64,000 nucleotides of DNA, from sequence record OQ603353.1; one strand, written 5' to 3'. Made by a program: the position numbers and the translations under genes. The first letter of the stretch is position 1. The number at the start of each line of letters is the position of its first letter. The notes under the pieces were generated by a model that ran no database searches, had not been told where the DNA came from, and saw only the letters and a list, made by a program, of their open reading frames with translations. This document shows positions 26,118-63,837 of the stretch, piece after piece.

Positions 26118-26127
26118 GTTTCTTTCC

Positions 26128-26370
26128 TTAGAGAATGGTGGTGCGCCGCTTGCCCTTGGGGTGCAGCGCTACCGAGTGGAGGTTGTTGAGGTCGATCAGG
26201 TCCGTTGGTTCAACCGCTGCGCCGTTGATATGCACAGCGCCATTGTTCATCCATCGCCTCAACTCCGAATTGCTTGCGGGTGACTTGGGGTTTTCAGTGG
26301 ACCAAAAGCCACCCGCTCCGAATTTGTGGATGCCTTGCAAGTATGCAAGCGCAGTTGTCAGTCGCTTCAC
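26128..26370 (-). CDS. S4-like RNA-binding protein (TyrRS C-terminal-like)
   Basis: SNSELRRWMNNGAVHING; GTGA overlap places the start at 26370. Confidence 0.6.
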   Translation of the reverse strand: MKRLTTALAYLQGIHKFGAGGFWSTENPKSPASNSELRRWMNNGAVHINGAAVEPTDLIDLNNLHSVALHPKGKRRTTIL

Positions 26371-42780: not shown

Positions 42781-42820
42781 TAGGATTCTCCATAGTTGTG
42801 TCGGTGGATGGTGCGGAGCG

Positions 42821-43009
42821 TTATGCTCCTTCGTGCACCGCTGCCATTTCCGCAGCGGTAAGGTGCCTGCATCCCGCCATCAGCATTTCCATGCAGATAG
42901 GACAGTGGTACATGCCAATAGGCATGCCCATCAGGAGTTCGGGATGCTCATGGCATTCAAAGTCAGCGTTGCGGTAGAAGCGCGCAAGCACCAACTGGAT
43001 GTTCTCCAT
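42821..43009 (-). CDS. Small Zn-ribbon-like hypothetical protein (start uncertain)
   Basis: GMPIGMYHCPICMEMLMAG motif. Confidence 0.45.
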   Translation of the reverse strand: MENIQLVLARFYRNADFECHEHPELLMGMPIGMYHCPICMEMLMAGCRHLTAAEMAAVHEGA

Positions 43010-48159: not shown

Positions 48160-48187
48160 AAAAACTGAAAGGGCCCTCCGTGGCCCT
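48160..48187 (-). terminator. Intrinsic terminator with a CsrA-consensus loop
   Basis: AGGGCC-ACGGAG-GGCCCU then UUCAGUUUUU. Confidence 0.7.
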
Positions 48188-48196
48188 ATCGGTGTA

Positions 48197-48433
48197 TCAG
48201 GTTGCTTCGCTTTCCGCACCCGAAGTGACTTCGGTTGGGCTAGTTGACTTGGCAAACGGCACGCCGCGCTGGATGCGTTCGTGGACTTCCTGACGATTGA
48301 CCGGGGTTTCCTTCGGTGCGTCAATACCGATTTTCACTTGATTGCCCTTGACACCAAGGATACGCACCGTAGACATATTCGAGCCGGTGCCAATCATGAC
48401 TGCTTCACCAATGCGGCGAGTAAGAAGCAACAT
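48197..48433 (-). CDS. csrA: Carbon storage regulator CsrA/RsmA
   Basis: [15 protein letters not shown]...[33 protein letters not shown]. Confidence 0.95.
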
Positions 48434-48524
48434 TTTTTGTTTCTCCGTGAAAGTAGTGGGCGACTTTCTTGGTCAGCCCTAGTGAATTGAAAAACGAATG
48501 AGACGTTCCGTGTTAGACCTAACC

Positions 48525-48630
48525 ACGCATTCGATTGCTGTGCCCCTAGGTGGTGCTGCGCATAGGGCGCAGCTTGTCAGAGCGCATATCCAACAAGCTG
48601 CGAGCGTCAGAGGGCTCCAATCGGATGCGT
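48525..48630 (-). ncRNA. Candidate structured RNA (four-way junction) in the csrA upstream region
   Basis: Four contiguous helices with 0/0/0/4-nt linkers, found by manual pairing; see findings. No family recognised. Confidence 0.55.
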
Positions 48631-48691
48631 GTAGATCGTTAATCCTTACGTGTTTGAGTGGTTGCTTGCGCGTGATTCAATCAAGGTGCTG

Positions 48692-49051
48692 CTATACCTT
48701 ATTTACAGTATCCGAGCTACCCATTTGAGCGAAAGCGGAACGCCAACTATCCATGCGTGCCTGCTTTTCTGGATCAAGGGGCAGGCTGTGATAGAAGGGG
48801 TCATGGTCCTTGACCGTCCTCCCCGTGATGGTCAGCATGGTCACGTCGTTCGACCGCACCGCACAAGAGCGCAGGCAACCGGGACATATGTGAACGTACT
48901 CCTGCCCGTGAGGCACATACAGCATCATCGGCGGTTCATGCTCAGGATGCTGGCACGGCTTCCACGCTTCCTGCACGGGGCGCATGTGGGATTGGATTTT
49001 CTCTTCCAGTTCAGAGAAGTCCGTCTTGATGGTAAGCTGTTGCTTGTTCAT
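48692..49051 (-). CDS. Hypothetical protein with CxH/CxxC cluster
   Basis: PCQHPEHEPPM...HICPGC; ATGA overlap start. Confidence 0.6.
   Translation of the reverse strand: MNKQQLTIKTDFSELEEKIQSHMRPVQEAWKPCQHPEHEPPMMLYVPHGQEYVHICPGCLRSCAVRSNDVTMLTITGRTVKDHDPFYHSLPLDPEKQARMDSWRSAFAQMGSSDTVNKV
48700..48708 (-). promoter_or_regulatory. CTGTAAATA phage promoter-like motif
   Basis: Heads the 260-nt non-coding region and csrA. Confidence 0.6.
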
Positions 49052-63038: not shown

Positions 63039-63228
63039 TTAGACACGCCTGCGTTACAGTAAAATCTGAGCAGTCTGAGGGGAAACCGCCGCAGGGGTCG
63101 AAAACGCAGAAACGCGGATCCTTCAATCCCCAGCAATAAAAAACGCGGAGACTTGATGTTTTGACAGAAATTTTATGTAACGTACCCTCCCCTAGAGATA
63201 TTAGACACGCCACCGTTACAGTAAAATC
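63039..63228. repeat. 28-bp direct repeat pair (63039-63066 and 63201-63228)
   Basis: TTAGACACGCCTGCGTTACAGTAAAATC vs TTAGACACGCCACCGTTACAGTAAAATC (2 mismatches). Confidence 0.9.
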
Positions 63229-63242
63229 GTCTTTTCAGGTGA

Positions 63243-63282
63243 AAACCCCACCCCAAAGGGGCCAGCCTTTGGGGTGGGGTTT
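63243..63282. repeat. Perfect 17-bp inverted repeat with 6-nt spacer
   Basis: AAACCCCACCCCAAAGG-GGCCAG-CCTTTGGGGTGGGGTTT. Confidence 0.9.
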
Positions 63283-63837
63283 CGTACCCAGGTACACATC
63301 AGGAATCTCTAGCTCTACGTTTCTATGAAATCCCCACTAAGGCACAAACCTAGGAATGGCTCCGGCCTCCGGCCTTCTCCATTCGTACAGGTTGTTCTTA
63401 GGGGGAATGCCTTTTCGCTTACGCGATCCTCCCTGATTCAGCCTCTAGAGAACGAAATCCTCTAAAATCACCGCGTTTTTCGTAGTTTACCCTGTAGCTG
63501 GTAAGCCGGAGGCCCAAACTCCGGGTAGTTTAGGGTCCAACCTCCTAAAAATGGTTCCAGAACCTACATTTTCCTGCCTGCGTTTCCGGCAGTTCTGCCC
63601 TTACGGAACCACCCCGCACGGGTCAGGATCGACCCAGGAGGGTCAGAATGGGTCCAGAAGGCCAAAATCGCCTAGGATCGAGCATATCTACGCTGGATGC
63701 ACGCTGTTTTCTCGCAATTTGAGTGTACGAGGGCGATAGAACCCCTCAGCCTACCATCACCTGCTCTGGCGTTGTCCGGGTTGGGGTGGAAATTGTGTCA
63801 TAACAACTTACGGACAACTTCAACTGAGGAACACGTT

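Follow-up and report, generated by a model that had tools for sequence, protein, structure and literature searches.

A predicted four-way-junction RNA fold upstream of csrA in a clade of near-identical jumbo phages

To our knowledge, phages commonly carry copies of the global regulator CsrA, and these copies are hardly studied; we know of no account of how a lytic jumbo phage times and doses its own CsrA. The phage of sequence record OQ603353.1 gives this question a concrete form. Its csrA gene is preceded by a long gap without open reading frames, and the RNA of that gap can be folded into a compact four-way junction. Is this fold a working part of the csrA transcript, or is it a repeat of another origin that lies between two genes? 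The window analyzed here is a stretch of 64,000 nt of that record. All coordinates are those of the whole stretch, and the element is read on the minus strand, which also carries all of the genes around it.

The element lies between csrA and an upstream open reading frame (ORF). The csrA gene (48197–48433, minus strand) encodes 78 amino acids, matches Pfam family PF02599 with an E-value of 1.5e-18, and is annotated as CsrA in phage PhiXhv-12. The upstream ORF (48692–49051, minus strand) encodes 119 amino acids of no known family. The ORF-free gap between them, put at about 260 nt in an initial annotation of this DNA, measures 258 nt (48434–48691), and no sense-strand ORF of at least 25 amino acids is found in it. 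Its sole frame, of 24 amino acids with a TTG start (48546–48620), lies inside the stems and has no Shine-Dalgarno sequence, and the variants that fall in it are one synonymous and two non-synonymous, so a leader peptide was rejected. Directly after csrA there is a clean intrinsic terminator (48170–48187, minus strand) in which a T-rich tail comes after a GC stem of 6 bp; csrA therefore closes its own short transcription unit. A replication origin was set aside because no change of skew or composition is seen, as were a retron msr/msd and an omega or guide RNA, since neither a reverse transcriptase nor a TnpB-like gene adjoins the element.

The 1-kb region round the element is 99.8–100% identical in five jumbo phages with genomes of 227–229 kb, namely Xanthomonas phage Ep026, Erwinia phage Ep032, PhiXhv-12, and PhiXhv-15, as well as PhiXhv-16. 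The three PhiXhv phages are lytic phages of X. hortorum pv. vitians that form a new genus (PMC13340338). The paper describing them makes no mention of csrA, promoters, or RNA elements (PMC13340338), and a literature search turned up no publication that deals with structured leaders of phage csrA genes.

The whole folded element spans 48516–48637 on the minus strand (122 nt). It is predicted to consist of a 19-bp closing stem and a three-hairpin core, which together make a four-way junction with a minimum free energy (MFE) of -56.0 kcal/mol. The four helices named in the initial annotation, P1 to P4, are all found by direct reading of the minus strand. In P1, 48618–48630 faces 48525–48537 with 12 of 13 positions paired and one C x A mismatch. 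One further pair, C48631-G48524, prolongs this helix, and an outward extension of six more pairs (GAUCUA/UAGGUC) brings the closing stem to 19 bp. The 5′ strand of this stem occupies 48618–48637 (P1 at 48618–48631 with C48624 unpaired, and the extension at 48632–48637), and the 3′ strand occupies 48516–48537 (P1 at 48524–48537, a 2-nt bulge at 48522–48523, and the extension at 48516–48521). Its irregularities are thus the C x A mismatch and the 2-nt bulge.

The three hairpins of the core follow one another closely on the same strand. P2 (48602–48617) pairs GAGC with GCUC and has a C/U-rich loop of 8 nt. P3 (48569–48601) is a 13-bp hairpin, in which 48589–48601 pairs with 48569–48581, including two G.U pairs, and which carries the 7-nt loop UAUGCGC. 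P4 (48542–48568) consists of CCCUA/UAGGG and the pair G48568-C48542; its loop measures 14 nt, and its bulge at 48543 is variable. The junction linkers of 0, 0, 0, and 4 nt, and the complementarity between UGCGC of the P3 loop and GCGCA of the P4 loop, are likewise present in the sequence as had been claimed. This complementarity stems from a duplication of UAUGCGC, in which GCGC is self-complementary, and so it gives weak evidence for a possible kissing contact between the two loops.

It had also been proposed that the element is an undescribed non-coding RNA or cis-regulatory leader. This agrees with the searches, in which Rfam 15 gave no match at gathering score in the whole window and no match at E-values up to 10 for 48300–48900 on both strands. 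ARAGORN found no tRNA or tmRNA in the window, and elsewhere in the phage genome it found only a tRNA-Asn. A tRNA was also rejected on architecture, since arms of 19, 4, 13, and 5 bp and this order of linkers are unlike those of a tRNA. Among phage RNAs, the pRNA of phi29 is a three-way junction that belongs to small protein-primed podoviruses. The csrA element shares with it a phage origin, a length of about 120 nt, a long helix that closes the 5′ and 3′ ends, a multi-helix junction, and two loops complementary to each other. However, the junction here is four-way, it would lie inside an mRNA leader, and it has no match to pRNA in Rfam.

Does the sequence fold better than chance? The initial annotation had proposed a comparison with shuffled controls, and its outcome favors the fold. 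The 116-nt minus-strand RNA has an MFE of -52.2 kcal/mol, which corresponds to a z-score of -5.16 against 200 dinucleotide shuffles, none of which (0 of 200) reaches the native energy. Among the 120-nt windows of the 64 kb, the element ranks about 17th in energy, with a GC-corrected z-score of -2.9. On the other hand, the frequency of its MFE structure, 0.40, ranks second of 3196 windows, and the window that ranks first is a trivial fold of -19 kcal/mol. The answer is therefore mixed: the fold exceeds chance relative to shuffles, while its energy is unexceptional relative to the phage's own sequence.

Other gaps in the window also fold strongly. The ORF-free gaps 26118–26366 (z -4.5) and 42781–42962 (z -4.2), both on the minus strand, fold much better than shuffles, and their architecture is unlike that of the csrA element. 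A further gap of 584 nt at 63214–63797 (minus strand) has no ORF of at least 50 amino acids and an MFE of -219.6 kcal/mol. It ends in an 18-bp GC-rich terminator, and Rfam gives no match for it at gathering score. The gap could encode a large non-coding RNA or contain small genes that were overlooked.

The antisense strand of the csrA element folds too (-54 kcal/mol, z -3.78), as must be expected of any inverted repeat. This bears on a rival explanation that is possible, though on the unlikely side, in which the element is functionless or a feature of the DNA. It would then be an inverted repeat carried passively between two genes, either a relic resembling a miniature inverted-repeat transposable element (MITE) or a fortuitous palindrome. 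The antisense fold, with its z-score near -3.8, and an energy that does not stand out from the genome background are both in keeping with such a repeat, whereas the outlying MFE frequency is not. In addition, the sense strand does better than the antisense strand against shuffles (z -5.16 vs -3.78), and its G.U pairs in P3 and in the extension of P1 become A.C mismatches on the antisense strand. These G.U pairs, together with a natural variant that turns a G-C pair into G.U, favor pairing in a sense-strand RNA.

Micro-variation in the element was followed in the contigs of four public sequencing runs and in the GenBank and Logan relatives. Five sites vary in the 107-nt core. In P1, C to U at 48527 changes a G-C pair to G.U, and in P3, G to A at 48578 changes a U.G pair to U-A. 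Two neighboring changes, U to C at 48611 and C to U at 48612, fall in the P2 loop, and G to A at 48543 falls in the P4 bulge. None of the five breaks a pair of the junction model, for which a rough estimate of the chance is about 0.14. The variants are therefore compatible with the junction fold, yet they are not evidence for it. Its 5 variable sites in 107 nt compare to 9 in 844 nt of flanking sequence, so that the element shows no higher conservation than its surroundings, and a rate per base above that of the flanks is also what a passively carried repeat could show.

The closing stem has pair probabilities of 0.95–1.0 in all five alleles and P3 has a pair probability of 0.99, so that in the models P1 and P3 are certain. 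The rest of the core depends on the allele. G at 48543 is found only in the phage of the window and in Ep026 and Ep032, which are identical to it over this stretch, while A is found in the three PhiXhv genomes, a Logan contig, and the runs X13, X19, and X20. In the window allele (G), the pair probability is 0.14 for P2 and 0.04 for P4, and an alternative helix between GCCCU (48611–48615) and GGGGC (48542–48546) has a probability of 0.85. The four other alleles (A) all have the four-way junction as their MFE structure, with P2 and P4 at 0.74–0.99. This means that a single base at 48543 flips the predicted fold of the core. Moreover, the alternative helix has, in its two 5-nt strands, three of the five variable sites. 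Such sites may simply be free to vary, or the balance of the two core folds may be under some pressure.

These observations speak for another, very unlikely, rival explanation, according to which the element is a switch. The switch would toggle between two nearly isoenergetic core folds, the four-way junction and an elongated helix, or it would work through a closing stem that is held open. In the latter variant, CsrA or a ligand would hold open the closing stem's 5′ strand, which has AAGGA and UUGGAG on its flanks, and the 3′ strand would form an alternative hairpin before a U5 tract, so that transcription stops before csrA. The 3′ strand of P1 can indeed pair with 48495–48512, ending at U5. 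However, this alternative terminator reaches only -7.5 kcal/mol and is absent from the prediction even with the 5′ strand forced open, and the closing stem, at 19 bp, is too long and by far too stable to be the usual P1 of a riboswitch. There is also no Rfam aptamer and no conservation that would define a binding pocket.

For these reasons a terminator/antiterminator switch was rejected, its alternative hairpin being too weak at -7.5 kcal/mol, and so was a riboswitch, for which that value stands against about -56 kcal/mol for the closed fold and no aptamer is found in Rfam. Aptamers of the SAM-I type share with the element a compact four-helix junction of about 100–120 nt in a 5′ leader, but the csrA element has no Rfam match, no convincing expression platform, and a closing stem of 19 bp instead of 4–8 bp. 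A new class of bistable four-way-junction riboregulator in the leader of a jumbo-phage csrA, with a toggling core or a stem opened by CsrA, is a long shot. If it were true, it would let the phage adjust, in the course of infection, how much of its own global translational regulator is present.

Is the fold transcribed at all? The initial annotation had pointed to a motif ahead of the ORF-free region, and the promoter-like sequence CTGTAAATA is indeed found at 48700–48708 on the minus strand, where it overlaps the last codons of the upstream ORF. We take this motif to be similar to the T4 late -10 box TATAAATA. The window holds seven exact copies of it, all on the minus strand; the six other sites are at 1284, 1590, 6897, 13807, 23001, and 36973. 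Its 8-base core, TGTAAATA, occurs 19 times in the complete 227-kb genome of PhiXhv-12, preceded by C in 18 of the 19 copies, and the motif also has an extended form, (A/T)(A/C)CTGTAAATA. All 19 core copies are in the sense direction and upstream of ORFs, often just after a terminator. The genes behind them include two topoisomerase genes, a primase, an acyl carrier protein, a nucleotide pyrophosphohydrolase, and a deazaguanine operon, and the class looks like a set of replication-phase promoters. Three copies in PhiXhv-12 (173694, 180748, and 188150) are preceded by the palindrome-like sequence GGTGCCA(T/A)TTTGGCA, which could be an operator.

The distance from the motif to the start codon is mostly below 60 nt and once 121 nt, and the 266 nt before csrA is the longest of the 19. 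The promoter-like motif, the 266-nt leader that it would imply, and the lack of a sense ORF of at least 25 amino acids thus suggest that the fold most likely lies within a transcribed csrA leader.

Many public runs hold the sequence, mostly runs of DNA or of undetermined type. Run X18 gives four short contigs with depths of 9, 19, 34, and 9 that break at gene borders. This depth pattern looks like RNA, and X18 is the only such run. Its contigs cover both flanking genes, ending at 48489 on the csrA side and at 48658 on the side of the upstream ORF, and they leave 48490–48657 uncovered; X18 is also not among the runs that contain words of the element. The hole is centered on the fold within 3 nt and extends 20–26 nt past the stem on each side. 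It fits an excision at the closing stem or a dropout caused by structure. It may equally correspond to an untranscribed region, and the hole by itself proves nothing. It does argue against an abundant stable small RNA.

The hole bears on a third rival explanation, which is judged quite unlikely. Here the element would belong to a separate small RNA of about 170–200 nt, made from the CTGTAAATA promoter or cut from the leader, with its 3′ end at a U5 tract (48490–48494, minus strand) and acting in trans through C/U-rich loops. The promoter motif upstream fits this, as do a hairpin with the U5 tract 22 nt after the fold, the end of the X18 gap (48490–48657) exactly at that tract, and the C/U-rich P2 loop, which is like an anti-Shine-Dalgarno sequence. 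Against it, the hairpin before the U5 tract has only -3.0 kcal/mol and is not called by a terminator scan, and the abundant stable RNA that would be expected in X18 is absent from it. Moreover, no target and no homologues were identified.

The initial annotation had also suggested a possible tie to the phage CsrA, and a link of the junction itself to CsrA was not borne out. CsrA-type sites do occur in the leader, but they lie downstream of the junction, at distances of 3 nt and 66 nt and outside its loops, and reading of the P2, P3, and P4 loops finds no GGA in them. The first site, ACACGGAAC (48505–48513, minus strand), overlaps the weak hairpin that ends in the U5 tract (region 48490–48513). 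The second, UCACGGAGA (48442–48450, minus strand), overlaps the Shine-Dalgarno sequence GGAG of csrA. Their CACGGA cores, at 48507–48512 and 48444–48449, are 63 nt apart, and the second overlaps GGAG 7 nt before the csrA AUG. In the whole 227-kb genome there is one pair of CACGGA 10–70 nt apart, which is that of the csrA leader, and by our own estimate the chance of two CACGGA in 266 nt is about 0.002. GGA as such is not enriched in the leader, which has 5 copies in about 260 nt where about 4 would be expected; in PhiXhv-12 the A allele at 48543 creates one more, for a total of 6.

Leaders that are repressed by CsrA, such as those of E. coli glgC and of csrA itself, have one GGA site on the Shine-Dalgarno sequence and a second within 10–63 nt. 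At the level of sequence the phage leader has this same arrangement, with two CACGGA 63 nt apart and one of them on the Shine-Dalgarno sequence, as in leaders repressed by CsrA/RsmA. The four-way junction, whose loops have no GGA, is however foreign to that module. These sites suggest that csrA may be autoregulated by the phage CsrA, or be under the control of host RsmA, independently of the junction. Since the junction loops have no GGA and the leader is not enriched in it, the element is not a CsrB-like decoy, and a CsrA-sequestering small RNA of the CsrB, RsmY, or RsmZ type was rejected.

No homologue diverged by more than about 2% was found in any collection searched, and as a result there is neither covariation nor proof of selection. 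Searches of phages by blastn, for which the 1-kb region as well as the element by itself served as query, recovered only the five genomes, at identities of at least 99.4%, and plasmids gave no match. Neither BLAST nor a covariance model (R1) detects another copy in the 227-kb phage genome, and the model finds only the site of the element itself. When IMG/VR was searched with the CsrA and upstream-ORF proteins, only unrelated csrA phages were recovered, in which the covariance model finds nothing; the P3 pattern is absent from IMG/VR as well, and that collection is without this phage group. An exact 20-mer beside the element is absent from the JGI metagenomes.

For the upstream ORF, a search of 5.8 billion proteins gave one homologue, which is 98% identical, and the nearest non-self CsrA is 67% identical in its core only. 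The loci of four such CsrA proteins are unrelated contexts. The single 18-bit match of the covariance model at these loci lies downstream of a csrA and was rejected as a generic GC hairpin. Other phage csrA genes have upstream gaps of 4–116 nt, and no analogous fold is found before them. The element is therefore confined to one tight clade of near-identical phages. The proposal of an undescribed non-coding RNA or leader stands in part: it agrees with the lack of an Rfam family, the position on the strand of the genes, and the longest leader of its class, while covariation and the public sequencing runs give it no clear support.

Conservation that stops at one tight clade is again in keeping with an inverted repeat that is carried passively, and the form of the element strengthens the resemblance. 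Its ends look like imperfect terminal inverted repeats of 20–22 bp, it is intergenic and about 122 bp long, and TAAC stands on both sides. Bacterial MITEs such as Correia and ERIC are likewise about 120 bp, with terminal inverted repeats of about 20 bp and 4-nt flanking direct repeats, intergenic, and strongly folded if transcribed. When tested for terminal repeats with a target-site duplication, the element gives 20 matches in 22 end positions with a 2-nt indel, flanked by TAAC, a weak result because the boundaries were drawn post hoc. MITEs are, however, multicopy by definition, and here BLAST and the covariance model show a single copy in the phage and no further copy exists in any collection searched, so an identification as a MITE failed. 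A pattern made from the repeat core has 8 matches in 185,579 species genomes and 6 in the JGI metagenomes, but none of these is similar in its interior or fits the covariance model, and phages, plasmids, and IMG/VR gave none.

An integron attC site was also considered by eye. GTTAGGT (48517–48523) fits GTTRRRY, and GATTAAC (48638–48644) nearly fits RYYYAAC. The motifs are out of register, there is no second site after csrA, and bacterial genomes gave no related sites, so this candidate was rejected.

Taken with these alternatives in view, the preferred reading sees in the element a structured domain within the csrA 5′ leader, with a role as a stabilizer or as an RNase III processing site. This reading is tentative, with a probability of roughly 40%. 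Transcription would start some 60 nt upstream of the fold, at the phage promoter that CTGTAAATA marks, and the csrA mRNA would carry an unusually long 5′ leader of about 260 nt with the element as its folded core. The leader RNA would fold into the 19-bp closing stem capped by three hairpins at the four-way junction, and the fold would presumably act in cis on its transcript, as a stable block that shapes the fate of the mRNA. In one form, the long irregular closing stem would be a processing site of the RNase III type that separates csrA from the RNA upstream; in the other, the fold would be a 5′ stabilizer. Translation of csrA would probably be controlled separately, at the two CACGGA sites 3′ of the fold.

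The RNase III sites of phages, such as those in the T7 early region, lambda sib, and the N leader, are simple hairpins with an internal loop. As a prediction, the closing stem of the csrA element would suit such an enzyme, because 19 bp make about two turns of mostly regular double-stranded RNA. Like the known sites, it would be a long irregular stem of about 19–20 bp with a mismatch and a bulge, located between genes on a phage transcript. It differs in being capped by a three-hairpin junction, and the likeness is one of predicted fold.

Several of the observations above support the leader reading. These are the z-score of -5.16, the second rank of 3196 in MFE frequency, and the junction as MFE structure in four of five alleles; the better folding of the sense strand and the G.U pairs that only it can form; and the sense direction of all TGTAAATA copies, with csrA having the longest leader. 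The variants in P1 and P3, which keep pairing while the other three fall in a loop or bulge, also support it, as do the unique CACGGA pair and the centering of the X18 hole on the fold. It is weakened by the lack of a diverged homologue, by an element no better conserved than its flanks, and by about 16 other 120-nt windows in the 64 kb that fold as well for their GC content. The X18 hole, which can be read both ways, and the absence of an analogue from other phage csrA genes weaken it further. An undescribed leader or non-coding RNA is a reasonable reading of the locus, though an unproven one.

At present, the value of the element, a well-formed predicted structure of a single clade, is that of a defined and cheap experimental target. 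Annotation of this phage group can make use of the promoter motif and of the paired CsrA sites. If the fold is functional, it would offer a handle on the control of csrA through processing, stabilization, or feedback, and it would represent a new orphan RNA family in a newly described genus of Xanthomonas biocontrol phages.
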